From Macrostomum hystrix (Eukaryota; Animalia; Platyhelminthes), in contig CATNEN010000002.1 of the NCBI GenBank assembly GCA_950097015.1, positions 2,108,001 through 2,172,000 on the forward strand: a stretch of 64,000 bases of DNA, in the 5' to 3' direction. Below the pieces are notes generated by a model. That model was given only the letters and a program-made list of their open reading frames with translations. It was not told the origin of the DNA and ran no database searches. Every line of letters starts with the position of its first letter. Position 1 is the first letter of the stretch. This document shows, one piece after another, positions 24,701 through 54,839 of the stretch. The position numbers were made by a program, and so were the translations under genes.

Positions 24701-25620
24701 AGGTAGACACTCCTGTCAAACAGGCAGACACTCTTGTCTAACAGGTAGACACTCCTGCCAAACAGGCAGACACTCCTGTCTAACAGGTGGACACTCCTGT
24801 CAAACAGGCAGACTCCTGTCTAACAGGTGGACAATCCTTTCTAACAGGTGGACACTCCTGTCAAACAGGTAGACACTCCTGTCTAACAGGTGGACACTCC
24901 TGTCAAACAGGCAGACACTCCTGTCTAACAGGTATACACTTCTGCCAAACAGGCAGACACTCCTGTCAAACAGGCAGACACTCCTGTCTAACAGGTGGAC
25001 AATCCTTTCTAACAGGTAGACACTCCTGCCAAACAGGCAGACACTCGTCTAACAGGTGGACACTTCTGCCAAACAGGCAGACACTCCTGTCTAACAGGCA
25101 GACACTCCTGTCTAACAGGTGGACAATCCTTTCTAACAGGTGGACACTCCTGTCAAACAGGTAGACACTCCTGTCTAACAGGTAGACACTACTGTCTTAC
25201 TTGTATATACTCCTATCTAACAGGTAGACACTCCTGTCTAACAGGTGGACAATCCTTTCTAACAGGTGGACACTCCTGTCAAACAGGTAGACACTCCTGT
25301 CTAACAGGTAGACACTACTGTCTTACTTGTATATACTCCTGTCTAACAGGTAGACACTCCTGTCTAACAGGTGGACACTCCTGTCTAACAGGTGGACAAT
25401 CCTTTCTAACAGGTGGACACTCCTGTCTAACAGGTAGACACTACTGTCTTACAGGTAGACACTACTGTCTTACTTGTATATACTCCTGTCTAACAGGTAG
25501 ATGCTTCTGTCTAACAGGTAGATGCTTCTGTCTAACAGGTAGATGCTTCTGTCTAACAGGTAGATGCTTCTGTCTAACAGGTAGACACTTCCGTCTAACA
25601 GGTAGATACTTCTATGTTCA
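21755..25620. repeat. 21-bp satellite CTCCTGTCTAACAGGTAGACA, about 180 units, with higher-order structure
   Basis: Read directly; identical pseudo-ORFs recur at a 1288-bp offset. Confidence 0.97.
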
Positions 25621-26007
25621 CACTTCTGTCTGACAAACAACAACGAAATTTGGACATTACAATCTAACAATGCTCTCTATTTCTGAAAAAGTTCTGTCAC
25701 AACTACTAATAAACATGAATGGGTTCGCCAGTTAATATTATCATTTTGAGTCACTCGTTAGACGCTGAACCAAAGTATTATTGTTGTTAAATCAATGTTA
25801 AAACAATTACAATACAGAAATTATAAGCCAAAAATTAGGCTTTTAACCATGAAACAGCTCAAATCCACTAGCAGTTGCTGACCATCTAAGCTCGTTTCAC
25901 AGTATTCACCCTTGACAAATTAAATTACATAAATTACGGTTGATACACACAACAGCATCATTACTAGGACACTTTCAAATAGTTCGGCGTTTTTAATGAT
26001 GGTTTCG

Positions 26008-28240
26008 GGTGGGTCATTCTTTGATGAGGGGTTTCAGGTGAGTCATTGCTTGATTGGGGTTTCAAATGAGTCATTGTTTGAAGGTGGTTTAAAGGTGGTT
26101 TCAGGTGCGTCATTTTTGATGGAGGTTTCATGTGGGTCATTGTTGATCGGGGTTTCAGGTGAGTCATTGTTTGATTGGGTTTCAGGTGAGTCATTGTTTG
26201 ATGGGGTTTCAGGTGAGTCATTCTTTGATGGGGTTTCAGGTGAGTCATTGTTTGATGGGGTTTCAGGTGAGTCATTGTTTGATGGGGGTTTCAGGTGAGT
26301 CATTGTTTGATGGGGGTTCCAGGTGAATCATTGTTTGATGGGGTTTCAGGTGAATCATTGTTTGATGGGGGTTCCAGGTGAATCATTGTTTGATGGGGTT
26401 TCAGGTGAATCATTGTTTTATGGGGTTTCAGGTGAGTCATTGTTTAATGGGGTTTCAGGTGAGTCATTGTTTGATGGGGGTTCCAGGTGAATCATTGTTT
26501 GATGGGGTTTCAGGTGAGTCATTGTTTGATGGGGTTTCAGGTGAGTCATTGTTTGATGGGGGTTTCAGGTGAGTCATTGTTTGATGGGGTTTCAGGTGAG
26601 TCATTGTTTGATGGGGGTTTCAGGTGAATCATTGTTTTATGGGGTTTCAGGTGAGTCATTGTTTAATGGGGTTTCAGGTGAGTCATTGTTTGATGGGGGT
26701 TTCAGGTGAGTCATTGTTTGATGGGGGTTCCAGGTGAATCATTGTTTGATGGGGTTTCAGGTGAGTCATTGTTTGATGGGGTTTCAGGTGAGTCATTGTT
26801 TGATGGGGGTTTCAGGTGAGTCATTGTTTGATGGGGGTTCCAGGTGAATCATTGTTTGATGGGGTTTCAGGTGAGTCATTGTTTGATGGGGTTTCAGGTG
26901 AGTCATTGTTTAATGGGGTTTCAGGTGAGTCATTGTTTGATGGGGTTTCAGGTGAGTCATTGTTTGATGGGGTTTCAGGTGAATCATTGTTTGATGGGGG
27001 TTCCAGGTGAGTCATTGTTTGATGGGGGTTCCAGGTGAGTCATTGTTTGATGGGGGTTCCAGGTGAATCATTGTTTGATGGGGGTTCCAGGTGAATCATT
27101 GTTTGATGGGGGTTCCAGGTGAGTCATTGTTTGATGGGGGTTCCAGGTGAATCATTGTTTGATGGGGTTTCAGGTGAGTCATTGTTTGATGGGGGTTTCA
27201 GGTGAATCATTGTTTTATGGGGTTTCAGGTGAGTCATTGTTTAATGGGGTTTCAGGTGAGTCATTGTTTGATGGGGTTTCAGGTGAGTCATTGTTTGATG
27301 GGGTTTCAGGTGAGTCATTGTTTGATGGGGGTTTCAGGTGAGTCATTGTTTGATGGGGTTTCAGGTGAATCATTGTTTAATGGGGTTTCAGGTGAGTCAT
27401 TGTTTAATGGGGTTTCAGGTGAGTCATTGTTTGATGGGGGTTTCAGGTGAATCATTGTTTGATGGGGGTTTCAGGTGAATCATTGTTTTATGGGGTTTCA
27501 GGTGAGTCATTGTTTAATGGGGTTTCAGTTGAGTCATTGTTTGATGGGGGTTCCAGGTGAATCATTGTTTGATGGGGTTTCAGGTGAGTCATTGTTTGAT
27601 GGGGGTTTCAGGTGAGTCATTGTTTGATGGGGTTTCAGGTGAGTCATTGTTTGATGGGGGTTTCAGGTGAATCATTGTTTTATGGGGTTTCAGGTGAGTC
27701 ATTGTTTAATGGGGGTTTCAGGTGAGTCATTGTTTGATGGGGTTTCAGGTGAGTCATTGTTTGATGGGGGTTTCAGGTGAATCATTGTTTGATGGGGGTT
27801 CCAGGTGAATCATTGTTTTATGGGGTTTCAGGTGAGTCATTGTTTAATGGGGTTTCAGTTGAGTCATTGTTTGATGGGGGTTCCAGGTGAATCATTGTTT
27901 GATGGGGTTTCAGGTGAGTCATTGTTTGATGGGGGTTTCAGGTGAGTCATTGTTTGATGGGGTTTCAGGTGAGTCATTGTTTAATGGGGTTTCAGGTGAG
28001 TCATTGTTTGATGGGGTTTCAGGTGAGTCATTGTTTGATGGGGTTTCAGGTGAGTCATTGTTTGATGGGGTTTCAGGTGAGTCATTGTTTGATGGGGTTT
28101 CAGGTGAGTCATTGTTTGATGGGGTTTCAGGTGAATCATTGTTTGATGGGGGTTTCAGGTGAGTCATTGTTTGATGGGGTTTCAGGTGAGTCATTGTTTG
28201 ATGGGGTTTCAGGTGAGTCATTGTTTGATGGGGCTTCAGG
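26008..28240. repeat. 27/28-bp satellite GGGGTTTCAGGTGAGTCATTGTTTGAT, about 80 units
   Basis: Read directly; 9-aa periodic pseudo-ORFs (GVSGESLFD). Confidence 0.97.
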
Positions 28241-28349
28241 TAAAGTTTAGCTTTAGATTGACCAAAGCGGACAGTTATAGTGTTAAAAGAAGTAAAATAT
28301 TATTTTGCTTTAAGAAAACATGACAGCAAAGCAATTAAATTCTGCCAGA

Positions 28350-31300
28350 TCACATGACCGACGTCGCCCTGCCTGCAACTCTGGCTCTGCTGCTGCTGCT
28401 GCTGCTGCAACCGCCGCCACCATCGCCTCTTGGACCGTCGTCGGTGTTGATCGCGGTCGCGCCCAGCTCTGCCTGCAGAATGCGGGCCGCGGTGTCCTGG
28501 TATTTCTCGAACGACAAGAAGCCGGTGATGACCATCCCCTCGAGGATTTTGATCTCCCTGCAGGCTTCATGTGACAGAAGTGGAGGCAGCTCATAGAATG
28601 CCCACTTCGGATTGACACCATGTTTTGTAGATCTCTCTAGATTAATTCTTGGATGCTGCTGCTGCTGCTGTTGCTCTTGCTGGTAAACCTTGCCAGGTGC
28701 CACTAGAAACGGTTGCTGCTGCTGCTGCTGCTGCTGCTGTCTATTGCTCCGTCTTGATAGGAGGCACTGGCTGAGACCCATGTCACACTGCAGAAGATTT
28801 CACAACTTTTATCTTTTCTTTTAGGAAACTTGGCTTCTGTGTACAAGCAAAGCGATCAGCTGTGAAACTGCATGTCAGTTTTGCTTCTTTATTTCCATAG
28901 AAGTTAGCATTTTGGTTGAGACTAAATAAAAGTACGCCAATAAGAGATTTCTCTCTTGCAAGTCTGGTTTAGCTTTGTCCCACATTTGTCCGATTCTTCA
29001 GTTTACACGGATAGTTATTAGTTTATGTTCAATATCTTCTTTAAGTCTAGAAGGAACCCATAAAAGAAAGTAAAAAGAAAGAGAGTGGAATGGTAGAGGG
29101 GAAAGTAGAATGGTAGAGGGGGAGAGTAGAATGGTAGAGGGGGGAGAGTGGAATAGGAGAGGGGAGAGTAGAATGTGAGAGGGGGAGAGTGGAATGGAAG
29201 AGACAGAGTAGAATGTGAGAGGGGGAGAGTAGAATGTGAGAGGGGGAGAGTGGAATGGAAGAGGGGGAGAGTAGAATGGGAGAGTGGAGAGTAGAATGGG
29301 AGAGTGGAGAGTAGAATGGGAGAGGGGAAGAGTGGAATAGGAGATAGAAGAGTAGAATGGGAGAGGGGAAGAGTGGAATAGGAGATAGGAGAGTAGAATG
29401 GGAGAGGGGAGAGTAGAATGGGAGAGGGGAGAGTAGAATGGGAGAGGGGGAGAGTAGAATGGGAGAGGGGAGAGTAGAATGGGAGAGTGGAGAGTAGAAT
29501 GGGAGAGGGGAAGAGTGGAATAGGAAATGGGAGAGTAGACTGGGAGAGGGAGAGAATGGAATAGGAGAGGGGAGAGTAGAATGGGAGAGGGGAGAGTAGA
29601 ATGGGAGAGGGGAGAGTAGAATGGGAGAGGGGGGTGTGGAATGGGAGAGGGGAGAGTAGAATGGGAGAGGGGGGTGTGGAATAGGAGAGGGGAGAGTGGA
29701 ATGGGAGAGGAGGAGAGTAGAATGGGAGACGGGAGAGTAGAATGGGAGAGGGGGAGAGTAGAATGGGAGAGGGGAGAGTGGAATAGGAGAGGGGAGAGTG
29801 GAATGGGAGAGGAGGAGAGTAGAATGGGAGAGGGGAGAGTAGAATGGGAGAGGGGGAGAGTAGAATGGGAGAGGGGAGAGTGGAATGGGAGAGGGGAGAG
29901 TAGAATGGGAGAGGGGGAGAGTAGCATGGGAGAGGGGAGAGTAGAATGGCAGAGGGGGGGAGTAGAATGGGAGAGGGGGAGAATGGAATAGGAGAGGGGA
30001 GAGTGGAATAGGAGAGGGGAGAGTAGACTGGGAGAGGGGAGAGTAGACTGGGAGAGGGGAGAGTAGACTGGGAGAGGGGGAGAGTAGACTGGGAGAGGAG
30101 GAGAGTGGAATGGGAGAGGGGAGAGTAGACTGGGAGAGGGGAGAGTAGACTGGGAGAGGGGAGAGTAGACTGGGAGAGGGGGAGAGTAGACTGGGAGAGG
30201 GGAGAGTAGACTGGGAGAGGGGAGAGTGGAATGGGAGAGGGGAGAGTAGACTGGGAGAGGAGGAGAGTGGAATGGGAGAGGGGAGAGTGGAATGGGAGAG
30301 GGAGAGAGTAGACTGGGAGAGGGGAGAGTGGAATAGGAGAGGGGAGAGTGGAATGGGAGAGGGGAGAGTAGACTGGGAGAGGGGAGAGTAGACTGGGAGA
30401 GGGGAGAGTAGACTGGGAGAGGGGGAGAGTAGACTGGGAGAGGGGAGAGTAGACTGGGAGAGGAGGAGAGTGGAATGGGAGAGGGGAGAGTAGACTGGGA
30501 GAGGGGAGAGTAGACTGGGAGAGGGGAGAGTAGACTGGGAGAGGGGGAGAGTAGACTGGGAGAGGGGAGAGTAGACTGGGAGAGGGGGGAGTAGACTGGG
30601 AGAGGGGAGAGTAGACTGGGAGAGGGGAGAGTGGAATAGGAGAGGGGAGAGTGGAATGGGAGAGGGGAGAGTAGAATGGGAGAGGGGAGAGTAGAATGGG
30701 AGAGGGGAGAGTAGAATGGGAGAGGGGGAGAGTAGAATGGGAGAGGGGAGAGTGGAATGGGAGAGGGAGAGAGTAGACTGGGAGAGGGGAGAGTGGAATA
30801 GGAGAGGGGAGAGTGGAATGGGAGAGGGGAGAGTAGAATGGGAGAGGGGAGAGTAGACTGGGAGAGGGGAGAGTAGACTGGGAGAGTGGAGAGTAGAATG
30901 GGAGAGGGGAGAGTAGAATGGGAGAGGGGAGAGTAGAATGGGAGAGGGGAGAGTAGAATGGGAGAGGGAGAGAGTAGACTGGGAGAGGAGGAGAGTAGAA
31001 TGGGAGAGGGGAGAGTAGACTGGGAGAGGGGAGAGTAGAATGGGAGAGGGGAGAGTAGACTGGGAGAGGAGGAGAGTGGAATGGGAGAGGGGAGAGTGGA
31101 ATGGGAGAGGGAGAGAGTAGACTGGGAGAGGGGAGAGTAGACTGGGAGAGGAGGAGAGTGGAATGGGAGAGGGGAGAGTGGAATGGGAGAGGGAGAGAGT
31201 AGACTGGGAGAGGAGGAGAGTAGAATGGGAGAGGGGAGAGTAGAATGGGAGAGGGGAGAGTAGACTGGGAGAGGAGGAGAGTGGAATGGGAGAGGGGAGA

Positions 31301-33493
31301 GTGGAATGGGAGAGGGGAGAGTAGAATGGGAGAGGGGAGAGTAGAAACAGCAGAGGCAGCTAAATTTTAGCAGTGTGCACAAGAATCAAGTCTGGTTTCA
31401 ATTGCAGTAAAAAAACTCACAGCTTCTAAAAGTGCATACATGTGTTTCCATGGTACATTTGCTATAAGGGAATAAATTTTCTTCAACTGGAAAAGCAAAC
31501 TATTCACAGTCAACCTCGATTAGGCAGATTGGAATTGGGGATTCAAAGGATTTTCGATTATTTCAATTAGATTTTTTCGCTAAAATATCTAGCTCGTATA
31601 AATTCATAAGCACGTTTTTAGGATTTATACCCTCCCAAGACAGGGATTATTGAGATCTGAACTGAGGTTAATGGCATGCTCCTATTTTGAACTAACTCAG
31701 CCAAAAATGGATAGAAATAGCTGTTGGGATTCTAGTCTAACACGTGTTTACTGAGCTAAGGCTTTCAATTGATATGGCGACTGAAATTTCATGAAATTTT
31801 GGCTTGTTCTAGGAATGTTCTGGGATTATAGGAATGGTATTGGATAAATTGGATTCTGTGAATGATATAGAATTAATGGGATTCCGGAAATGATATAGGA
31901 TGTGTGGGATTCAAGGAATGATAAAGGATAAATGGGATTTTAAATGTGATATCGGATGTGTGAGATTCTAAGAATGATGTAGGATAAATGGGATTCTAAG
32001 AATGATGTAGGATAAATAGGAATTCTAAGAATGATGTAGGATAAATGGGATTTTAAGAATAATGTAGGAAAAATAGGAATTCTAAGAATGATGTAGGATA
32101 AATGGGAATTCTTGGAATGATATAGGATAAATAGGATTCTAGGATTGATAAAGGGTAAATAGGATTCTAGAATTGATATAGGATAAATAGGATTCTAGGA
32201 ATGATATAGGATAAATAGGATTCTAGGAATGATATAGGATAAATAGGATTCTAGGAATGATATAGGATAAATAAGATTCTAGGAATGATATAGGATAAAT
32301 GGGATTCTAGGAATGATAAAGGGTAAATAGGATTCTAGGAATGATAAAGGGTAAATAGGATTCTAGAATTGATATAGGATAAATAGGATTCTAGGAATGA
32401 TATAGGATAAATAGGATTCTAGGAATGATATAGGATAAATAAGATTCTAGGAATGATATAGGATTAATGGTATTCTAGGAATGATATAGGATAAATGGGA
32501 TTCTAGGGATGATATAGGATAAATGGGATTCTAGGAATGATATAGGATAAATGGGATTCTAGGGATGATATAGGATAAATGGGATTCTAGGAATGATAAA
32601 GGGTAAATAGGATTCTAGAATTGATATAGGATAAATAGGATTCTAGGAATGATATAGGATAAATAGGATTCTAGGAATGATATAGGATAAATAGGATTCT
32701 AGGAATGATATAGGATAAATAAGATTCTAGGAATGATATAGGATAAATGGGATTCTAGGAATGATATAGGATTAATGGTATTCTAGGAATGACATAGGAT
32801 AAATGGGATTCTAGGGATGATATAGGATAAATGGGATTCTAGGAATGATAAAGGATAAATGGGATTCTAAGATTTGCATTTCTTACATTTTTGCATCCTA
32901 CATTCTTCATCAACAAACATATTATCTGATTTTCATTCTAATTAAATAGAAATCGACAGGATGCAATTCATTAAAACAAAAACGATGTCACAAAGCCGGA
33001 AACTGCAAGGAGGTGAAACGCTTGTGGCTTTTCTTTCATTTCAGTTTCCTGAGTTGATCAGAGGCTGACTGCTCATACAGGAAGCTCAGTCTCACACACG
33101 AGTACCTGGGCTTTCTGGGCATTTCAGAGAGGAACGATCTCTAATAATAGAAGTAGAAAAAAGCAGAAAACTCTACTGTATTCGCTACTTCCGCGCAATT
33201 TGTAACTTTCGTTTTGACTTATTTTTCTGCAAATAAATAGGCAATAACAATGCTAGCTGCGGGATGGTTCGGCAAATGACGCAGAACAGTCTAACTAGCA
33301 GCCAGCGAGGAGGCAATTCTGCCCGTTCCGCTGAGTCCTGAGCTCACAATCACTCACTGATTCATAATACCGTATAACACAGCAACACACTAACACAGGT
33401 GTGTACATCTGCCCTGGATTGTTTTCTCTGCATAAATGCCGATGTATGGAAGGTAGTAGTAGTACATGTATGAGGTTGTTCAATTCATTCTGA
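28350..33493 (-). CDS. Tentative FAM124-like protein, partial (5' exons unresolved); exons 33493-33358, 31486-31421, 28787-28350
   Basis: Three exons have canonical splice sites (tatttag|T...TCA|GTGAGT; cttttccag|TTG...GCT|GTGAGT; ttctgcag|TGT) and join in frame: QNELNNLIHVLLLPSIHRH...PVLVCCCVIRYYES-LKKIYSLIANVPWKHMYALLEA-CDMGL...WAFYELPP...ACREIKILEGMVITGFLSFEKYQDT. The order of motifs resembles recalled FAM124 (WIHPDL; PALAVVLF; QPPWRHH; DFFTLAP; YDNYADS). The family call is from memory and is weak. Confidence 0.5.
29075..31345. repeat. 20-bp purine-rich satellite GGAGAGGGGAGAGTAGA(A/C)TG (intronic in the FAM124-like model)
   Basis: Read directly; source of the 794-aa SPLP pseudo-ORF. Confidence 0.95.
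31830..32868. repeat. 28-bp satellite GGATTCTAGGAATGATATAGGATAAATG, array 1
   Basis: Read directly. Confidence 0.95.
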
Positions 33494-35544: not shown

Positions 35545-36990
35545 TTCCTTGATCAGTTCAATGACCAAATCGATTATCAGTTCAATGACCAATTCCATGA
35601 TCATGCAGTTTAATAACTAATCCAATGTCAGTTCAATGACCAAATCGATAATCAGTTCAATGACCAAATCGATAATCAGTTCAATGACCAAATCGATAAT
35701 CAGTTCAATGACCAAATCGATAATCTGCAGTTCAATGACCAAATCGATAATCAGTTCAATGACCAAATCGATTATCAGTTCAATGACCAAATCGATTATC
35801 AGTTCAATGACCAAATCGATTATCAGTTCAATGACCAATTCCATGATCAGTTTAATAACTAATCCAATGTCAGTTCAATGACCAAATCGATAATCAGTTC
35901 AATGACCAAATCGATGATCAGTTCAATGACCAAATCGATAATCAGTTCGATGACCAAATCGATAATCAGTTCAATGACCAAATCGATAATCAGTTCAATG
36001 ACCAAATCGATAATCAGTTCAATGACCAATTCCATGATCAGTTCAATGACCAAATCGATAATCAGTTCAATGACCAAATCGATAATCAGTTCAATGACCA
36101 AATCGATGATCAGTTCAATGACCAAATCGATAATCAGTTCAATGACCAAATCGATAATAAGTTCAATGACCAAATCGATAATCAGTTCAATGACCAAATC
36201 GATAATCAGTTCAATGACCAAATCGATAATCAGTTCAATGACCAAATCGATGATCAGTTCAATGACCAAATCGATAATCAGTTCGATGACCAAATCGATA
36301 ATCAGTTCAATGACCAAATCGATAATCAGTTCAATGACCAATTCCATGATCAGTTCAATGACCAAATCGATAATCAGTTCAATGACCAAATCGATAATCA
36401 GTTCAATGACCAAATCGTTAATCAGTTCAATGACCAAATCGATAATCAGTTCAATGACCAAATCGATAATCAGTTCAATGACCAAATCGATAATCAGTTC
36501 AATGACCAATTCCATGATCAGTTCAATGACCAAATCGATAATCAGTTCAATGACCAAATCGATAATCAGTTCAATGACCAAATCGATAATCAGTTCAATG
36601 ACCAAATCGATAATCAGTTCAATGACCAAATCGATAATCAGTTCAATGACCAAATCGATAATCAGTTCAATGACCAAATCGATGATCAGTTCAATGACCA
36701 AATCGATAATCAGTTCAATGACCAAATCGTTAATCAGTTCAATGACCAAATCGATAATCAGTTCAATGACCAATTCCATGATCGGTTTAATAACTAATCC
36801 AATGTCAGTTCAATGACCAATTTGATGATACGTTCAATGACCAGTTCCCTGATCAGTTCAATGACCTAATCGATGATGACCCAATCAATTCAATTGAACT
36901 GATGACCAGTTCAATGACCAAATCTTTGATCACTTCAATGACCGCTTCCATGATCAGTTAAATGACCAGTTCTCTGATCAGTTCAATGAT
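35545..36990. repeat. 24-bp satellite TCAGTTCAATGACCAAATCGATAA, about 55 units
   Basis: Read directly; MTKSIISS and IIDLVIEL pseudo-ORFs. Confidence 0.96.
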
Positions 36991-42869: not shown

Positions 42870-45800
42870 CTAATGAAAGCCATTACAATGCACACTACTG
42901 ACATCGCTGGCAGCAGTAGTATGATTAGCAGTTGCCTTGGGAGTAGCCAAGGCGCGAACAATTTGAACGCCGAGCGCTCTAGCCAACGGAGGCGGCACAG
43001 CGTTGCCAATCTGGCGGTGCCTGGCAACAAGATCGCCAGCGAATCTATAAGCATCCGGGAAGCCCTGGGATCTGGCGCACTCTCTCACAGAAACAACCCG
43101 ATGCTGACTGGGATGCACAACCCGGCCCTGCTTGCCCATGGGCTCCGGGTTGGTCACGGTGGTGGAGAAGAAGCCTTCTACGTCCAGACGGCCGTACAGT
43201 CCGGCCCAGTGATTGTGGCGATCGCCAGTATGGGGCAGGCACCAGGGAATCAGGGTGTTGAGCTGCTTAGCCTGGCTGTCGCATTTGGCTCTGGACTTGG
43301 AGTTGCCGGACTGGGGCAGGGCGCATGGGCAGACGCCGCGGTCGCCGTGAGTGTAGCGAAGACGACGCGCGAGCGAACCGTCGCTGAGAGTCAACTGGGG
43401 ATGCGAACAGGTGCGAGTTTTAATGAGGATTTTTACTAACGATACAAACTGGACTAAGATTCGAACCCGGGCGCGAGCGGTCTCGCATCAAGGTCCGTGA
43501 GCTCGATTCCCAGGCGAGGCCACATTTATTTGTTTTGGAGGCTCGGGTGCTTGTCTTGCCATTTATGCAATCGAGGGCCAACCTCCAGGCACAATGAGAG
43601 TGCAATACACTGCCTGACGATGAGTAAGTCAGGGCACGTGTACACTCCCTGAGTGCGTGTGTGCTCAAATCCCATTTAAGTGCTCTCCTAAGATCTCCAA
43701 TCTCGCGCCGCCTCACCTCAACATTCGGCAGATCTCTCCAGTCGGCGCCCGGACAGGCGGGAATGAGCGCTAGCCGGGCCTCCACCAGAGGAGTGAGTTG
43801 TTTAGTCACGTGATCCGTGAGTCGCCGACTCGAATCTCGGCCGCCGCGCATGAGCAGCTGATAATGAGTTCTGGGCGGACAGCCGTAGGGTACAGGCTGG
43901 TCCAGCTTCGCCCCACCACCACTTTCAATAGCCGGCAGGTCGCTCAACGCGTCGCCAACTGTGATTGGCCGCAGCGGGCCACTGAAGCAGCCGCTGGCTG
44001 GCGAGGTCGGTGGTTCGAATCGGCGCTCGCCGACTAGCAAAGCCAGGCCGGCGCAGGCCTTCGGCGAGAAGGCGTGAACGGCTCTGGGGAAGTCGGCGAA
44101 ATTTTTGCCAGGCGCCGCTGCCAGGATGATGAGGCGACGGCGGGTTTGGGGCACGCCAAACTGGCCGGCCTGCAGGATGGCGGCACCTGCGGAGGTTGGG
44201 GTGGGTGGGGAGATAGATTTGTAGATTAGTAGGTCGGTAAATTGAAGACTAGTTATTAACGTAGATGAAATTGTAAGCACATAGATCGGTAGATCGGTAG
44301 CTGTAATGGTAGATAGAGTATTAAGCAACCTATTAGGTACATTGGTAGGTTTCAAGGTGGAAACTCGAGAATGTAGGACTCAGCCAACTCGACACTGAGC
44401 ACACAGATCAGCTGTCAGTTCGATGTGAAGGAGTCCCATACAATGTCCAGCTGCAGCCAATAGTCCAGTTTCGATTGTTAACCAGCAAGTCGCACAGTAC
44501 AAATAAACTGACCGACTGTGCAATTCGAGCTGGACAATGCGGAACAGACTGAGAATGGCTGAGCAGCTGCTCAAACTCAGCAATGCAACACACAGAATAC
44601 AATAGTAAGCCCACACACTTAGAGTGACGTCAAGGAATATTCGATTGTAAATGGAGAATGTAGGACTCAGCCAACTCGACACTGAGCACACAGATCAGCT
44701 GTCAGTTCGATGTGAAGGAGTCCCTTACAATGTCCAGCTGGCATTACTGTTCGTAAGTCTCATTTTGAATGCCGCGCTAAATACAAAGCCATAAAATAGG
44801 TATCTGGCTTTGAATGGCGGACATGATTGTGAAACAGACGAGTTGCTAATTAGCAGCTGAGCTATGTGCACCTGTATCTAACACTCTGGGTGGGTTTATA
44901 GGAAGGCATTTGGAATAGCAACATGACGCTCTGACAGTTGTACACAGCTGATCAAACTCCCTTTGGTGAGAAAGAGATGCCAGAAAATGAGTGGCATTGA
45001 AAATCCCATTGTGGATATTCGTCCAGTTCGGCAATATTAAAACAAATTCTGAAAGGATTAGCAGTGGAAAGACCTCTCCCTAGGTAAAAAAGGCCAACTC
45101 AAAGATAGCTCCCAAACCGACTGATCGATATCGGTGAAATTCTAGGCCAACAATCGTAAGGGGACATCACAATTATGCTCATTTTGGTGGTTTTTACCAC
45201 CAGAATCGTTGAATATCTCGACGATGTCGATGTTTGTGATTCAGGAAGTTGTTTCATCGGATAGAGCAGAAAACTTTAGCCTTCATGGCGGTTACTTGGT
45301 TGGGTGAACTAAAGTAATGCAGAGTTAATTGTCTTGCAAAGGGACAAAAATTGTTCTAGAGGAGTGGAAATCGAACTTACGACCATTTCGACGAAGTCGA
45401 CGCTGCTCAAACAATCGGCAACAACCCCAGTTTAAAGTATGTAGAACTCAGCCAACTCGACACTGAGCACACAGATCAGCTGTCAGTTCGATGTGAAGGA
45501 GTCCCATACAATGTCCAGCTGCAGCCAATAGTCCAGTTTCGATTGTTAACCAGCAAGTCGCACAGTACAAATAAACTGACCGACTGTGCAATTCGAGCTG
45601 GACAATGCGGAACAGACTGAGAATGGCTGAGCAGCTGCTCAAACTCAGCAATGCAACACACAGATTACAATAGTAAGCCCACACACTTAGAGTGACGTCA
45701 AGGAATATTCGATTGTAAATGGAGAATGTAGAACTCAGCCAACTCGACACTGAGCACACAGATCAGCTGTCAGTTCGATGTGAAAGAGTCCCTTACAATG

Positions 45801-48800
45801 TCCAGCTGGCATTACTGTTCGTAAGTCTCATTTTGAATTCCGCGCTAAATACAAAGCCATAAAATAGGTATCTGGCTTTGAATTGCGGACATGATTGTGA
45901 AACAGACGAGTTGTTAATTAGCAGCTGAGTTTTGGACACCAATGGTGACTTTGGATCAATTGTGATAGATAACAGAATATTGCTGGCATTGAAAATCCCT
46001 TTTTAGAAATATATTGTCCGGTTCTTTAATATTGAAAATAGAAAGGATTAAGCTCAATCATATCCGGGTAGCGATTTCTTCAAATCTGCAAACTTAGCGG
46101 CAAGGAAAGAATTGTACATCTTTGAAACTTTTATTTAAACAGCTCAACCTCACGTGTATGTTCCGACTTCAGATTCCACTTTAAATAGTTATAAGTCTTC
46201 AGACAGACACATAAAGTTCGATAAAATAATTACACCTGTCCTATTGCGCGGCGAATTTGAAGACTGCAAACGCCTGTTCAGTCTGTGGACAAGGGGACGC
46301 CACACTCACACTCAATAACTCAATTGTGAACTGAAGCTATGCTGAGTTAAATGAATTTCTAGGGGGAAACATATTGCTTCATTGAAGTGGGAATCGAACC
46401 CCCGACCTTGCTTTGAGTAAACACTCTAAAAATGGGCAAAATCCTCTTCAGAATTCAGAGTGTCTTTCTAAAGGACAAGAACGGATATAATAGAGTAGGT
46501 ACTGGTGGTCTTTGCCAATAAACACGGTAGAATTTTATCAAGTCAAGTTTTTAACATTAAATAGTAACTAATGTAGGACTCAGCCAACTCGACACTGAGC
46601 ACACAGATCAGCTGTCAGTTCGATGTGAAGGAGTCCCTTACAATGTCCAGCTGCAGCCAATAGTCCTATTCCCACTGAGGAATGCGGAACAGATTGGGAC
46701 TGGCTGAGCATATGCTCACACTGATAAATGTGACTCTAGCTCAATGACAACATGGAGAAAATGCTCACCTAGCTGATAGCCCATGGCCAGCAAACAGCGC
46801 ATTGTGAGCTGCAGAATGCAGGATTTGTTATAGGCTGCAAAATTTCTAACATTCTCCAGTAGGAAATAATCCGGCCGATAATAATCCGCGTAGCTCAGAA
46901 ACGATGCCACAAGCGAATTCTTTAGCTTGCTGGCCTCCCTGGCGTTGAATCGATTCATGCCGCTGTAGCCCTGACAGGGCGGGCCGCCACACAGCAGCTG
47001 CACTTGGCCCCGCTGCGGTATGGGCAGCTGGCGGCTGTCGGGCGTCACCGACACGCCGTCCATTGCAAGGCGAAGCAGCCGATTGCAGTCGTCAGTGAGC
47101 ACGGCGCAGTCAGGATGATTCAAAGCGAATGCTTTAGCAGCGTCCGGGTCGCGCTCGATTGCCCATCGGGTGATCGCGGCGCCAGCCTGATGAAGACCTT
47201 CGGAGAGGCCGCCGCAGCCGGAGAATACGTCTAGGCAGTGCAGCGGCTTCACCTGTGCCAGCGATGTGGTAAAACATTTTTAGGTTTCTAAGAAAGCACA
47301 TTTTCCAAAAAAACTGGAATATTTTTTAGAAAGCAAGAGTTGTTCTTAGAAAAAAGAATTTTTTCTTAGAAATCAAGACCTTTCTAGGAAAAAAGATTTA
47401 AAAAATATATACAAGATATACAGCAAGAGCTGTTCTAAGAAAGCAAGACTTTTTCTAAGAAGGCAAGCCATCTTCGAAGAAGAAAGCTTTTTCTACGAAA
47501 TTAATAATTTTTGTGAGAAGGCTGGGCTTTTTCTAGCTAAGAAAGCAAGACACTGAGCAAGTCAGTTTCCAATAAAGGAAGTTTCTTTACAAGAGAGCAC
47601 GACCTTTTTTAAAAAAAAACCTAGACTTTTCTAAGAAAGCAAGATAATTTCTGAAAATTGGCTTTTATTTTTAAAAGAGGAGAAAAAATGAGACAACTTT
47701 TAAGAACAACTTTTTTCTTAGAAAATGTTACGATTTCTCAGAAAGTGGGATGAGTTCTTAGAAAGCAAGACGAACGGACGATACTTATCAGTTAAAAAAT
47801 GCAAATTGGACCGCTATTTTTACCTGAGCAAGTCTAGCAGCTTCGGCCCGCATTGCAGGCAAATCAACAGATTCTTGTTCAACGCAGACCCGATGAAATC
47901 TGCCATCGGCCGAGTCAAACTGGCTTTCGTAATAGAATCGATCTGGCCCGGATAGAAAAAACTGCTCAGGCGAGTTATAGAGGCCGTCCAATTCATCGGC
48001 GTGAACTACAGAGCAGAGACCGCGCACACGCTCTTTGACCACAACTGAGCATTCTTCTTCGCTGCAGTAGAGCAGGTGCAGCGGCTGCTCAACGGCAGAT
48101 TCAACGGCGGCATCCTCTGGCCGGTAGAACATTCGCAAACTGATGCGCACAGGAAATGACTGACCGCGTTTCACTATTTCAACTATGCGACCGATCTGCC
48201 ATGTGGTTCAGGATTGCGGATTGGAAAAATATAGATCCCATCGTTATCCTCATATGTGCCCTTTAAAAGCTCAATTCTCAAACCTAAGCTGTTATCCCAC
48301 AGCCTGTCAGCTGTTATCCTAATCTGTGCCTTCAAAAGCTCAATTCAGTCTGTCAGCTGACATCCTACAGTCTGTCAGCTGTTATCCTACAGTCTGTCTG
48401 TCAGCTGCTATCCTACAGTCTGTCAGCTGTTATCCTACAGTCTGTCAGCTGTTATCCTACAGTCTGTCAGCTGTTATCCTACAGTCTGTCAGCTGTTATC
48501 CTACAGTCTGTCTGTCAGCTGCTATCCTACAGTCTGTCAGCTGTTATCCTACAGTCTGTCAGCTGTTATCCTACAGCCTGTCTGTCAGCTGCTATCCTAC
48601 AGTCTGTCAGCTGTTATCCTACAGCCTGTCTGTCAGCTGCTATCCTACAGTCTGTCAGCTGTTATCCTACAGCCTGTCTGTCAGCTGCTATCCTACACTC
48701 TGTCAGCTGTTATCCTACAGTCTGTCAGCTGTTATCCTACAGTCTGTCAGCTGTTATCCTACAGTCTGTCTGTCAGCTGCTATCCTACAGTCTGTCAGCT

Positions 48801-51800
48801 GTTATCCTACAGTCTGTCAGCTGTTATCCTACAGCCTGTCTGTCAGCTGCTATCCTACAGTCTGTCAGCTGTTATCCTACAGCCTGTCTGTCAGCTGCTA
48901 TCCTACAGTCTGTCAGCTGTTATCCTACAGCCTGTCTGTCAGCTGTTATCCTACAGCCTGTCTGTCAGCTGCTATCCTACACTCTGTCAGCTGTTATCCT
49001 ACAGCCTGTCTGTCAGCTGCTATCCTACAGTCTGTCAGCTGTTATCCTACAGCCTGTCTGTCAGCTGCTATCCTACACTCTGTCAGCTGTTATCCTACAG
49101 TCTGTCAGCTGTTATCCTACAGTCTGTCAGCTGTTATCCTACAGTCTGTCAGCTGTTATCCTACAGTCTGTCAGCTGCTATCCTACAGTCTGTCAGTCAA
49201 TAGGTGCAAGCAGCGAACCTGATATGGCGGTGGTGTCGCCTCATTCGATCCCTTAACGTAGGCGGTCTTTCGGTAGCGCTCAGTGTACACAGACTCAGGA
49301 TAGGGTGAGTCACCATTGACAGCAGCCGACACTGCCGACTCCTTAGCCACCTTAGCGAACTTATGCGTACCCGGCTCCAGATAGCAACAGGATAGCAACC
49401 GGTAGACCTGCCCACGCCAATAAAACTCAGAATAGCGTCTAACTGACGTAGAATTCGAATCATTCTCAGATTCGAGCAGCCGACGCCCCGGCCTTGGAAC
49501 ACTCTCGCGGTGGGCGCGCCGTCTTGTGGTACAGGTCTGACAGTCGCCCTCATCTGCGTCATCTTCTTCGCTGTCCAGTTCGCTCTGATTGTCGCTTTCG
49601 CTAACGCCATTTTCGTTGCCATTGGCAACGACAGGCAGCGTAGGCGATGGCGGATCGATAAAATATCCCCGCTCGGGCAGGTAGACTTTCTGGTAGAACA
49701 ATCTGCCAGCCGCTGCGTTGGCCTCCATCTCTGCGGCGCTTGCCGTGAGTAGACGATCGCCTGAGCAGTTTGAGAATGCATGGCTGAGTAGTAAGTAGGA
49801 TGAGTCTAAATGACCAGAATTGTCATTGAATGACCAGAATTGTTACTGAATGACCAGAATTGTTACTGAATGACCAGACTAGTTACTGAATGACCAGACT
49901 CGTCACTAAATGACCAGACTAGTCACTAAATGACCAGACTAGTCACTAAATGACCAGACTCGTCGCTAAATGACCAGACTAGTCCCTAAATGACCAGACT
50001 CGTCGCTAAATGACCAGACTAGTCCCTAAATGACCAGACTCGTCGCTAAATGACCAGACTAGTCCCTAAATGACCAGACTAGTCGCTAAATGACCAGACT
50101 AGTCACAGAATGACCAGAATTGTCCGTAAATGACCAGACCCGTTACTAAACGACCTAAATAAACAGAAAAGCTCATTGAAATCACCAACCTGAAGTCCTC
50201 CTAGCAACATCCAGTTTCATCACCACGGTAGACAGATCGGCGGAGCAGCATTCGTCAGCGGTGGCAAACAGCTCGCACGGATCGGCCGTGCTGCCCAAGA
50301 TGGTGTCCTCGCCGTGGAGAAAAACGCTGGCGTGAAACCTGGCGCGCGCATCGGCAGCGCTGGAGCCGACGGTCTCGGAGTACAGTCTGGTTATCCTAGC
50401 CGCTCGCCACTGAGTAGGTCGGCCATCTCGCCAACTGGCCCGCCAAAGCACAAAATCTCCAAGCTTTAGCTGACACCGGGGACCAAGCTGAACGGCCGAA
50501 TAGTACAATCGGCTGACTGGACGACCGGATTTGACAATTTGGCGACGAATTGGCTGGCCCAGAAACTCGAAGCAATCGCCAGCCTGTGAGGCAAAGGAAG
50601 AATTGGTGTGGATTGTTCTCAGTGTGAAAAATACCTACAAATATTTCTGGAACTGTGAAAGCTCTTATGAATGAAATCTAAAAGACTGACAAACCAATAT
50701 CAAAGAACGACATACCAATATGAACGACTGACAAACTAATCTGAAAAAATGACAAACCAACATGAAAGAATGAAAAACTAATCTGAAAGAATGACAAACC
50801 AACATGAAAGAATGACAAACCAACATGAAAGAATGAAAAACTAGTCTGAAAGAATGACAAACCATTCTGAAAAAATGACAAACTAATCTGAAAGAATGAC
50901 AAACCATTCTGAAAGAATGACAAACTAATCTGAAAGAATGACAATTTAATCTAACAGGTTGGGACTAAAGCAGTGAGTAACAGTGCCAAACCTGAACAAG
51001 GGCGCTAGCGTTGAGCTTGGCAAGTCTAAGAAACATGTCCGCCTTAGTTGAGGTGATGAAATCAGCTGCCCGAACCTCGGCATCGAGCTGGTGCTGAAAC
51101 ACCGAGTCGAACACCGACCTGACCAGCGGAGTCACCGTGGCTTTGGTGTCCGCCGATGACGCCTGCGGCGGCGGCCTGGTCTGAACTATTCGACGATGAT
51201 GCCGACGAGGTCGATCTAGCCGAGACATTGTCGCCGATAGCCTAGGACCCTTATCATTCTCCTGGTCGTCGGCATCTTCATTGACGTCATCGTCGTCGCC
51301 ATCTTCGTCGTCTTCGTTGAGGCCGCTGAGCTCCAGCAGGGTGCGGATGCAGGGCTGCCTCATCAGCTCCGTGCCCTCCTCCCTGTCCATGGCGCGCAGC
51401 TGCTCGATGACGAAGCTCGCGTGGGACAGCACGGAGTCGGCGCTGATTGGCGCCACTCGCTCAAGCAGCTCCTCGTACTCGACGGCCTCCTCTTTGCGGC
51501 TGTCGCTCAGTAGGAGACACTCGGTGACAAGCTTGGTCAACTGGATCTTCTCCAGGGCCGACTCCATCAGGGATCTGGGGATCACACGGTAGATTATTAG
51601 GGATTAATCGGGATTCAAGGTGGGGATCACGCAGGGGATTATTAGGGATCAATTGGAGATTCGGTGCGGAACAATCCCTCAACTTCGGCAAGATGTGAAG
51701 GTGCCCTGATACTCACCTGTACTCGGAGTGCGGCCTAGCCAGGATGTATTCTCCGTATTCCGTGCTGAAGCCGACAATCGCTCGTTGACCGCCGTCAAAT

Positions 51801-52345
51801 CCAGACAGCCACCATTCGTCGATGGGTCCCATTCGGCGGCAGGCTATGCCGGCGCCTTCTAACGCGGCTTCAGCGTCGTCAATAGCCGAATAGATAGGCA
51901 ATAGGAGGCCGCTAAAGTACAGCTCGACATTCTCTTCAATTAGGCCTGTGTCAAATGGGCAGAGATGGCCAGCAGGACAGTAGACAGAGAAATCTGTCAC
52001 CTTCTGCTGCGGCCTAGCGTCTGCTTCGTCGTGAAGGACGGAGCCATCGGAAACCAGCGACAAAGCCGGGTGGGTGAGGGCCACGCATTCCTCCTGGGCT
52101 GTCGGCCTGTCGCCGTGAAACTGGCTGGCTTCATCAAGAAACTGCTTGCAGTAGTGACAGCGAGTGTTGGACGTGTTTTGGCGTTTGAAAGTGACGGTGG
52201 CTGCTGTAGAAGATTTCTGATCATTCGCATAGAGACAGCGCTGCTTCTTTGGATTGGAAGCGCCATTTAGGTTGCCAAGACAACAGTTGCTGTTTATAGA
52301 CGGCGAAGATTGCCCAGAAGATGGCAGCTTACGCTTTCGGCCCAT
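42870..52345 (-). CDS. DNMT1: DNA (cytosine-5)-methyltransferase 1, 1304 aa; exons 52345-51717, 51574-51076, 50583-50190, 49760-49219, 48195-47824, 47252-46769, 44186-43717, 43394-42870
   Basis: All seven introns are GT-AG with matching phases (2,0,1,0,0,1,0). RFTS domain: [49 protein letters not shown]1: [19 protein letters not shown]2: [17 protein letters not shown]. MTase motifs: [66 protein letters not shown]: [24 protein letters not shown]. Confidence 0.97.
45290..45400 (-). mobile_element. Truncated tRNA-derived SINE fragment; another fragment lies at ~46320-46420
   Basis: Shares GGGTGAACT..AATGCAGAGTTAATTGTCTTGC..AGG.AC..and the reverse B-box (AATCGAAC) with the copy at 58.6-58.7 kb. 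Confidence 0.55.
46571..46715 (-). ncRNA. Candidate intronic H/ACA-like (sno/scaRNA-type) two-hairpin RNA; the other four copies are equivalent candidates
   Basis: On the DNMT1 sense strand: GGACTC [7-nt] TCGAACTGA..TCAGTGTCGA [7-nt] GAGTCC-T-ACA-NNN, with ACA 14 nt below the upper stem. The hinge ACATTG does not fit ANANNA. The structure was folded by eye only. Confidence 0.3.
48290..49197. repeat. 22/26-bp minisatellite TCCTACAGTCTGTCAGCTGTTA in DNMT1 intron 4
   Basis: Read directly; source of the 298-aa pseudo-ORF. Confidence 0.95.
49808..50150. repeat. 20-bp minisatellite AAATGACCAGACTAGTCACT in DNMT1 intron 3
   Basis: Read directly. Confidence 0.93.
50670..50945. repeat. 21-bp minisatellite AAAGAATGACAAAC(T/C)AA(T/C)(C/A)TG in DNMT1 intron 2
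   Basis: Read directly. Confidence 0.9.
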
Positions 52346-54839
52346 GAACCTTTAAGATGGGCGGGTTTGTCACTGAGTCCACTCAGAATTCTCACTTCTA
52401 AGCTTGGACCGTCAGGCAGTGTCGCTTTCTTTTTCAGCACTTTTATGTATTGTTGTTTAGCTGCAGAAATTTATTTCAAAAAACATAACATGTAACTTTA
52501 TGTTTTATGCAAATAAAGAAAACAGTGTTTTATTTTATGGCTATCAGTTTTTAATAAATATAAGTGAACCATTTTTAGATTCAAGACAATTATTCCTAAT
52601 TTTCTGTCTGAAATAATGTATAATAATTTGCTTTCATGTATGATTTGGACTGAAGTTCCAACTATTATGAGGCCAAACTGTGCACATGTTTATAAAAATT
52701 TGCAGATTTCAAAAAATTGCTTTGAAAGAACCAATGACTGCCAAGCAAGAATTAAAGAAGCTGGTTGCCTATGTTATGTCCTAGCTGGTCAAGTCAAGTG
52801 CAACACTTTTTATGTCATTCTTGACATTAACACATTTAGAAACATTTCAATTTGACAGATTCTGTCTTCAGTCTTGCTGTTTCGCTGTAGGCTTTGCACC
52901 TTACAAAGGAAGTGGGTAGTCTGGGCATCTATTAATAAGCATATTTATATGAGTATTAACACACGTTAAAAAACTAATCTCATCTGTTGACTAATTTGTA
53001 GGCAGGTGAAATTGATAAGGAGATGAGTTAGGCAGTTGGCCAACTTGGCATTAACTGAATTGAGATTAAACTGCTATTATGACAGTGTACTTATTTCTGC
53101 TATATTTGCACATAACATGTTATTTGATAGCTATGAGATAACAAGTCTTTAAAATGAGTCAAATCTTAGGTGCATTTGAGTGACTAATGCATTAATTGCC
53201 ATTTTAACATACTTTAGTCAATTAAACATACCTAATGGCTTTGTAGCATGTAGACAACATTGTTTTAATTGTCTTTATGGCAGACAAGTTTGTCGGCCTA
53301 CAAAGTTTCTTTAAAGACAAGTTAATAGCAGTAGCAGATAAGATGGCAGTAGACAATAAGACCAGAAACAGTTGAAGACACTTAAAGCACAAGCATTAAT
53401 GTCATGACTAATAGCAACAAGTAAATATTGTTGAGGAAAGAAAATTAGGCCTAAGATTATTGCACTGCCCATTTAGCAGAATTCTTAACTTATCTGGCTA
53501 ACTATCATGATCAAGCATGCAAAATAAAAGTTTAACATTAAGTAATTTATGCTTACATTTGGTAATGATACTCACAGTAGTATGATTTACAATTTATTAT
53601 TTTTCTTGTTATTTATTACCTATTGTAAATTTGTTATAACTGACAAGTGGAAGTTAAATATAGAGAAGCTCTGGTTTCAACTGGATAGTAGTGACACACA
53701 GAGCAGAGTTGGTACATCAGCAGTTTAGACATTGACCCTAATGCTTAATTAGGCCTACTTCCTTAGGTACTAATATATTTGTAGAGAATCTATTACATAC
53801 ATGTACAACCTCCCAAATCTTAGCCGGCTGTGTGACTTCATTTTGCTCTCATTTGCAACTTAGTTCATTTCATTGCTCTATTTACAACTTAGTTTGCTCT
53901 CATTTGCTCTCTTTTTCTCTCCCCTTTTTCCTTTTCTTCATGCCTTCCTTTTTTATCCCTTAGTCCCCTTTGATTTTTTTGCACTTGGTTGATTGGTTTT
54001 TGCGACTTACCTTGCTTGGCCCTTGTTTCACCTGGCCGGTTCAGCCGGGTGTTGCACATGTATGATCCATTATTATTTAGTTATTAGGCCCCTTTTTATC
54101 AACATACCCATAGTCAGTGTCCCGTTACATTGCTAATTCACTGGTACCTGTCAATATAGTAGGCCTAGGGATTATTAGATTCTAAATAAGATGGTCTGTC
54201 AAATAATCATGTCATTTTGTGCATGTAACTTTAACTGCCTTCATTAGGCCTAGTTTCTCAGTCCAACATATAATTTCAAATGGCAACCACGCAATAAGAA
54301 TTTATATTAGGCCTACACTACAGTAACAAGAAAACACAATCAGAAAATTCATTGCCAATTTTTATACACTTAGGCCTATATTACATTGCCAATGGGCTAA
54401 GGGGCCATGAGGGTTAGGTCCTGCAAATAAATAGCAGGCCTACCTACTGGCTACTAGGCATATGCTAGGCCTACCTTGCTAATGCTTAGCTATTCTCTAA
54501 GTCTAAGGCAAACAAATGAGCTGTACGCCTGTACCAAATAAGGATAATTCGAAATAAACAAATTTGGTCAAAATTAAATTGTATGTAAACAAAAATAGGC
54601 CCTATTTCAGGTAAAATTATTAATTATTTAAAATTAAATTCATAGCTAGCTGTGATAGGCCTATCCAATGTGAATTATTTTAAATTTTAGGCTTCCATTT
54701 ACTTTATTAAGTTATACAAAAGTAACTAAACCGATATAGAAAATGCTAAGTAGATACTATACACTAGATTTAAATGTGGTAACAGTCCAACTGCGCTAAC
54801 AACCACTAGGCCTACGGTAAAAATGATCTGATATAGTTA

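Follow-up and report, generated by a model that had tools for sequence, protein, structure and literature searches.

The 64,000-nucleotide stretch of Macrostomum hystrix DNA analyzed here (the window; contig CATNEN010000002.1 of assembly GCA_950097015.1, positions 2,108,001 to 2,172,000) carries on its minus strand, at 52345..42873, a DNMT1 gene of eight exons. The coding model comprises 1332 codons (3996 nt, the sum of the exon lengths, with consistent phases). In order, the encoded protein consists of a short N terminus, the RFTS domain, an equivalent of the segment termed Activating Helix in human DNMT1 (PMC12474915), a cysteine-free spacer of ~33 residues, BAH1, BAH2, and the C5-methyltransferase domain. 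A DNMT1-type gene on this strand had been recognized in an initial annotation made from the DNA letters, and Pfam agrees, with matches to RFD, BAH, and DNA_methylase on separate exons. The same annotation had noted the absence of two elements, the CXXC finger and the acidic linker between it and BAH1, and this absence is the subject of this report.

RESULTS

Structure of the DNMT1 gene and RNA-supported splicing

The elements of the 5' half of the gene, all in window coordinates, are as follows.

51717..52345, minus strand: exon 1, coding sequence from the ATG at 52345; ~60-residue N terminus, then the RFTS N-lobe; contigs colinear from 51717 to beyond 52400
51575..51716, minus strand: intron 1, 142 nt, GT..AG; junction in contigs of three of four runs
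50992..51574, minus strand: exon 2; RFTS C-lobe, acidic disordered stretch, activating-helix equivalent, and 28-residue spacer; spliced contigs; 69% identity to M. lignano
50992..51075, minus strand: spacer-coding segment at the end of exon 2, 84 nt, 28 residues; present in contigs of all four runs
50584..50991, minus strand: intron 2, 408 nt; GT at 50991/50990, AG at 50585/50584
50675..50944, no strand assigned: 21-bp satellite in intron 2, 12.9 copies (Tandem Repeats Finder)
50190..50583, minus strand: exon 3, start of BAH1; contigs; aligns to mouse and human BAH1
49219..49760, minus strand: exon 4, remainder of BAH1 and BAH1-BAH2 connector; contigs, weak alignment to DNMT1 structures, tblastn with M. 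lignano

Four sequencing runs from one study cover the locus. Their kind is unrecorded. About half of the stretch sampled is exon, and ~55% of its sampled words occur in the runs; because three GT..AG introns are skipped in their contigs, we regard the runs as derived from transcripts. Aligned to 48600-52400, the run contigs showed zero mismatches. The skipped segments, each GT..AG on the gene strand, are 51575-51716, 50584-50991, and 49761-50189, and a fourth contig junction leads from 49219 to 48195, where a loose contig end maps to 48166-48195. RNA junctions thus define introns 1 to 4, and the rest of the model comes from tblastn with the Macrostomum lignano protein together with GT/AG sites. 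The open frame of exon 1 begins at 52351, with a stop codon just upstream of the ATG. Here and below, all searches employed single exons of the window gene, with the natural M. lignano protein serving as full-length proxy.

At the end of exon 2, the RNA departs from the initial annotation, which had placed an intron of 492 bp at 50584-51075, joined DAE directly to AGD, and arrived at a model of 1304 residues. The GT at 51075/51074 and the AG at 50585/50584 do occur in the sequence, 51076 is the last base of the ..QHQLDAE codons, and the acceptor, with the AGDCFEF exon start at 50583, was correct. The proposed donor is not one used in RNA: in contigs of all four runs, 50992 is spliced to 50583, and a donor at 51076 is used in none of them. 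Exon 2 is therefore 84 nt longer than first drawn, and intron 2 measures 408 nt. Between DAE and AGD lie 28 in-frame, cysteine-free residues that are conserved in M. lignano, and the coding model accordingly has 1332 codons (1304 + 28).

The 3' half of the gene encodes BAH2 and the catalytic domain.

47824..48195, minus strand: exon 5, BAH2; Pfam BAH E=1.7e-10; 3' end by tblastn and GT
46769..47252, minus strand: exon 6, methyltransferase motifs I to VI, PCQ catalytic cysteine, ENV; Pfam DNA_methylase; 92% identity to M. lignano; boundaries by homology and GT/AG only
43717..44186, minus strand: exon 7, motif VIII and first part of the target-recognition domain; translation, tblastn; boundaries by homology and GT/AG only
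42873..43394, minus strand: exon 8, target-recognition loops, motifs IX and X; stop codon 42870-42872; 226 bits to human DNMT1; Pfam

A cysteine-free spacer in place of the CXXC finger and acidic linker

The alignment of exon 2 to mouse DNMT1 (PDB 3AV4) spans chain positions 220-350 and ends at ~residue 640, just ahead of the finger, with TKAT.T.LV..FD..F..Q as the last matched segment. Alignment resumes at ~723-746 (residue 24 of exon 3 corresponds to chain position 456, ~residue 746, within BAH1), which leaves ~80 mouse residues (~641-722), comprising the CXXC finger and the acidic autoinhibitory linker, without counterpart in the window gene. No exon of the gene gave a Pfam match to zf-CXXC (PF02008), for which a canonical DNMT1 scored 57 bits as a positive control, and a six-frame regular-expression scan of the whole gene span detected no CXXC-type cysteine motif. 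The acidic linker is likewise absent: the activating-helix equivalent and the start of BAH1 are separated by only ~33 residues, which are non-acidic. The 21-bp satellite in intron 2 and the lack of a hidden cysteine-rich exon there, both of which had been pointed out before, are upheld for the shorter intron as well: its three frames encode satellite-derived peptides only.

A strongly acidic run that is predicted to be disordered is encoded at 51230-51300 on the minus strand, between the RFTS C-lobe and the activating-helix equivalent. An acidic stretch thus precedes the activating helix here, whereas in mammals it follows the CXXC finger. This run may take over some role of the lost linker, which is pure speculation.

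The closest protein is the DNMT1 of M. lignano (UniProt A0A1I8GWX0; NCBI BOX15_Mlig007124g1, 1287 residues), found by phmmer with exon 1 and by cluster look-ups. Its tblastn alignment to the window consists of eight colinear blocks with just 55-92% identity per exon, which marks M. lignano as a distinct species. The protein has the same domain order, no CXXC, and the same cysteine-free spacer before BAH1. The Pfam annotation precomputed for it lists only RFD, BAH, and methylase, without PF02008. In the M. lignano protein the spacer is followed directly by AGDPVEFLGEP, which lends independent support to the junction defined by RNA. Because layout and spacer are shared, the loss of CXXC must predate the split of the two species.

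The spacer itself comprises 28 residues with zero cysteines, located where the CXXC finger and acidic linker would sit. Its identity to M. lignano is 23/28 versus 113/166 for the rest of exon 2, from which we conclude that it is under constraint. AlphaFold2 modeling of M. lignano residues 200-1287 (mean predicted local distance difference test score, pLDDT, 78; spacer pLDDT 36-74) predicts, with low to moderate confidence, that the spacer forms one short helix and one strand ahead of BAH1. We also considered that it could be a decayed CXXC remnant and rejected this, as its resemblance to the CXXC motif is limited to a "DM" dipeptide and the alignment is unsupportive. Homologue searches with M. 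lignano region 40-420 and with window exon 2 returned M. lignano entries only. In the paper library searched, no article dealt with the domain content of Macrostomum DNMT1 or remarked on the missing CXXC in M. lignano.

Methylation genes and CXXC loci elsewhere in the genome

Searches for UHRF1 and for further DNMT1 paralogues, both of which the initial annotation had proposed, were extended to the whole 220-Mb assembly. The DNMT1 locus is the single match to PF12047 (RFD) in the genome. PF00145 matches the DNMT1 gene and two other loci, and a UHRF1-type gene was located on the contig that carries DNMT1 (C2), ~4.4 Mb away.

C11:3925561-3925812: DNMT3-type locus; best solved relatives DNMT3A/3B
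C39:20070480-20072729: DNMT2/TRDMT1-type locus, by best solved relatives
C2:6581000-6590999, minus strand: UHRF1-type gene, UBL-TTD-PHD-SRA-RING, all five domains in order

DNMT1, DNMT2, DNMT3, and UHRF1 types are thus all present. At C3:4478500-4488499 there is a second SAD/SRA locus whose scanned open frames showed no ubiquitin-like, PHD, or RING domain. This locus could represent a diverged UHRF or a paralogue with SRA alone.

The genome-wide search with PF02008 returned eight CXXC loci, all on other contigs, with no match near the DNMT1 gene or beside any C5-methylase locus. None of the eight shares a contig with the DNMT3- or DNMT2-type locus, and the six that were scanned contain CXXC alone or together with PHD fingers, and neither a BAH nor a methylase domain. 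With no CXXC near any methylase locus and a single RFD locus, the 220-Mb assembly therefore contains neither a CXXC-bearing methylase nor a second DNMT1. Two pairs of CXXC loci (C29:332401 and C29:5408387; C8:4627004 and C3:11410145) have the same score, the same or nearly the same frame length, and the same peptide around the finger, and could be recent duplications or uncollapsed haplotypes.

It is highly improbable that the CXXC finger is still encoded, either by a rare alternative exon or isoform of this gene or by a separate gene acting in trans. Rare variants drop out of contigs, the RNA comes from one study, and eight CXXC loci do exist in the genome. However, the gene span is free of CXXC-type motifs in every frame, PF02008 has no match in the contig region of the window, the six scanned CXXC loci lack methylase and BAH domains, none of the eight lies on the contigs of the DNMT3- and DNMT2-type loci, and M. 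lignano has the same exon junction.

Retained domains

The initial annotation had described RFTS and the catalytic domain as intact, and Pfam, alignment to human RFTS, and the motifs in the translation confirm this. The RFTS on exon 1 scores 93 bits against Pfam DNMT1-RFD (PF12047) and 139.9 bits against human RFTS (~54% identity), and the cysteine and histidine positions that we take to be its zinc ligands are aligned with those of the human protein. The RFTS C-lobe on exon 2 aligns to mouse, and the activating-helix equivalent is present. BAH2 has a Pfam match on exon 5. BAH1 was found only via alignment to solved DNMT1 structures; a second BAH stretch is present in M. lignano, with a beta-rich fold predicted there.

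C5-methyltransferase motifs I, IV (PCQ), VI (ENV), VIII, IX, and X are all intact according to the translation and Pfam DNA_methylase matches on exons 6 and 8. In the last exon, a target-recognition stretch is identical to human save one Asp for Asn. We assume from the structure of mouse DNMT1 with hemimethylated DNA that the Cys, Leu, Trp, Leu, and Met of the 5-methylcytosine (5mC) pocket fall within this stretch; the Asp/Asn change is outside these five.

Other repeats in the window

Intron 4 contains a dense short-unit repeat (window 48409-48512). Two near-identical open frames of 312 nt, ~1 kb apart, in the large intron 6 (window 44383-44694 and 45451-45762) indicate a tandemly duplicated element. 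Beyond the gene, window 24001-32000 is of low complexity and strand-biased, with GC skew up to 0.77, CpG observed/expected of 0.08-0.27, and low GpC. At window 35862-36809 on the minus strand, an open frame of 316 codons consists entirely of (V/I)ELIIDL units, a satellite that happens to remain open.

DISCUSSION

A recurrent domain loss

By comparison to mammalian DNMT1 (PDB 3AV4, 4WXX, and 3PTA), the window gene retains RFTS (~140 bits), the activating-helix region, BAH1, BAH2, the catalytic motifs, and the target-recognition loops (226 bits, last exon). It differs in that mouse ~641-722 is missing and an unrelated spacer stands in its place. In addition, it is without a Pfam-matched N-terminal extension, and a KG repeat was not seen by eye.

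The loss of CXXC had been put forward as possibly new, which does not apply to animals generally. CXXC-less DNMT1 proteins are on record in the centipede Strigamia maritima and the mealybug Planococcus citri, for which possible action on unmethylated DNA and methylation of transposable elements were proposed (PMC7343188), in the annelids Dimorphilus gyrociliatus and Capitella teleta, one paralogue in the latter (PMC11292947), and in paralogues of the chaetognath Paraspadella gotoi (PMC12460157). As in Macrostomum, RFD, BAH, and methylase were kept in these proteins and zf-CXXC was lost. By contrast, the window gene is single-copy with DNMT3 and UHRF1 kept, whereas Dimorphilus is without DNMT3 and the chaetognath and Capitella proteins are paralogues.

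We recovered further proteins with strongly scoring RFD, BAH, and DNA_methylase domains and no Pfam zf-CXXC (E<=0.01) from the gall wasp Belonocnema kinseyi, the louse Menopon gallinae, Macrosiphum and Metopolophium aphids, the braconid wasp Chelonus insularis, and the copepod Tigriopus japonicus. Unlike the window gene these are all arthropod, and some are probably paralogues; the Belonocnema protein differs also in keeping the acidic segment after the deleted finger. CXXC was found in the cnidarian, ctenophore, pseudoscorpion, and beetle DNMT1s recovered, which suggests that CXXC is ancestral in animal DNMT1. Given its presence in cnidarian, ctenophore, and other arthropod DNMT1s, the published losses are most simply regarded as independent. 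The domain loss in Macrostomum is a further case of this recurrent, already published pattern.

Plant MET1 also has no CXXC, and the window gene had been proposed to converge on its layout. Convergent loss of CXXC is the part of that proposal that stands; a special affinity or kinship is not apparent, since exon 1 scores 24.6 bits against MET1 versus ~140 against human, and exon 8 scores 151 versus 226. The resemblance to MET1 is one of convergent loss and not of kinship. In MET1, the preference for hemimethylated DNA resides in the methyltransferase domain (PMC12474915).

Probable maintenance methylation without a CXXC module

We consider it very probable that this gene is the sole DNMT1 orthologue of a Macrostomum-type free-living flatworm, that it is transcribed and spliced into a frame of 1332 codons from which the CXXC finger and acidic linker have been deleted, and that its product is most likely still a replication-coupled maintenance CpG methyltransferase. 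In this scheme, the UHRF1-type protein would flag hemimethylated sites and attach ubiquitin to H3 or PAF15, and the RFTS domain, once bound to this mark, would vacate the catalytic cleft. The preference for hemimethylated CpG would come from the target-recognition domain, whose recognition pocket is intact. The single loss would be that of the additional CXXC-dependent barrier to unmethylated CpG, which mouse cells can do without in maintenance methylation. We infer that the enzyme is most likely a UHRF1-dependent maintenance CpG methyltransferase that derives its hemimethyl preference from the catalytic domain.

Several observations weigh against this interpretation. With respect to the gene model, the boundaries in exons 5 to 8 were set by homology and GT/AG rather than by RNA, except for the 49219 to 48195 junction, and the RNA evidence consists of contigs from one study, which can hide rare isoforms. 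Concerning the regulatory half of the protein, the human Phe-Phe pair of the activating helix (toggle pocket) is Val-Phe here and Ile-Phe in M. lignano, and BAH1 is strongly diverged, with no Pfam match and E ~1e-5 to solved structures. Only ~60 residues precede RFTS; Pfam on exon 1 finds RFD alone and no DMAP1-binding region, and a PCNA-binding motif was not seen by eye in the N terminus. DMAP1- and PCNA-binding regions are also missing from several published invertebrate DNMT1s (PMC11292947) and are therefore not strictly defining for a metazoan DNMT1. Finally, the exons show no CpG depletion (CpG observed/expected 1.02, introns 0.52). These ratios are not clearly informative about methylation.

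The CpG values and the divergence in the regulatory half also bear on a different proposal, that the gene has been retained for a function distinct from genome-wide DNA methylation, as has been suggested for Tribolium and Dimorphilus, and that the CXXC loss reflects relaxed constraint on the regulatory N-terminal half. The BAH1 and linker regions are 55-69% identical to M. lignano compared with 78-92% for the catalytic exons, the gene body is without CpG depletion, and the Tribolium DNMT1 and the CXXC-less Dimorphilus DNMT1 are precedents (PMC11292947). However, every catalytic motif is intact, UHRF1-type and DNMT3-type genes are retained, the spacer is visibly constrained, and 5mC has been reported to be present in M. 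lignano (PMC11292947). Such a role is in our view quite improbable.

Specificity for hemimethylated DNA

The initial annotation had suggested that the loss of the CXXC finger may have relaxed the specificity for hemimethylated DNA. Mouse Dnmt1 lacking CXXC rescues methylation in dnmt1-/- embryonic stem cells like the wild type, with H19 not remethylated (PMC3032784), and CXXC-less MET1 has a >9-fold preference for hemimethylated CG (PMC12474915). Together with the intact recognition stretch of the window gene, these data weaken, by analogy, the case for relaxed specificity. A modest de novo activity of the window DNMT1 is possible.

A stronger version would hold that loss of the CXXC finger and acidic linker gave appreciable de novo activity on unmethylated CpG and altered the methylation landscape, for example at transposons. 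In its favor, the entire autoinhibitory module is gone and not the finger alone, Lewis et al. linked CXXC loss in Strigamia and Planococcus to gained methylation of transposable elements (PMC7343188), and domain loss in chaetognaths has been linked to retargeted methylation (PMC12460157). We nevertheless regard it as unlikely, because removal of CXXC conferred no de novo activity on the mouse enzyme in cells (PMC3032784), MET1 prefers hemimethylated DNA despite lacking CXXC (PMC12474915), the presumed 5mC-recognition stretch is conserved, the retained DNMT3 could perform any de novo work, and 5mC is reported to be low in M. lignano (PMC11292947). It is similarly doubtful that the sole Macrostomum DNMT1, with a conserved 28-residue helix-strand spacer replacing the CXXC module, acts partly de novo and helps to methylate transposons. 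A UHRF1-dependent maintenance enzyme is thus the interpretation that we prefer.

Implications

Few platyhelminths keep DNMT1 and DNMT3; free-living flatworms are among them, and a 2022 review described their methylation patterns as unknown (PMC9246332). M. lignano keeps both enzymes and has low 5mC (PMC11292947, PMC9246332). On its own, the domain loss reported here is a small addition to a documented, recurrent pattern. In similar CXXC-less lineages, methylation has shifted onto transposons. If the Macrostomum enzyme did act de novo, it would provide a further independent case that connects CXXC loss with methylation of transposable elements, in a flatworm, after centipede, mealybug, and chaetognath. 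RNA interference and transgenesis exist for M. lignano. If the sole maintenance enzyme of Macrostomum works without the CXXC module, the genus would offer a tractable model for the role of this module in vivo.

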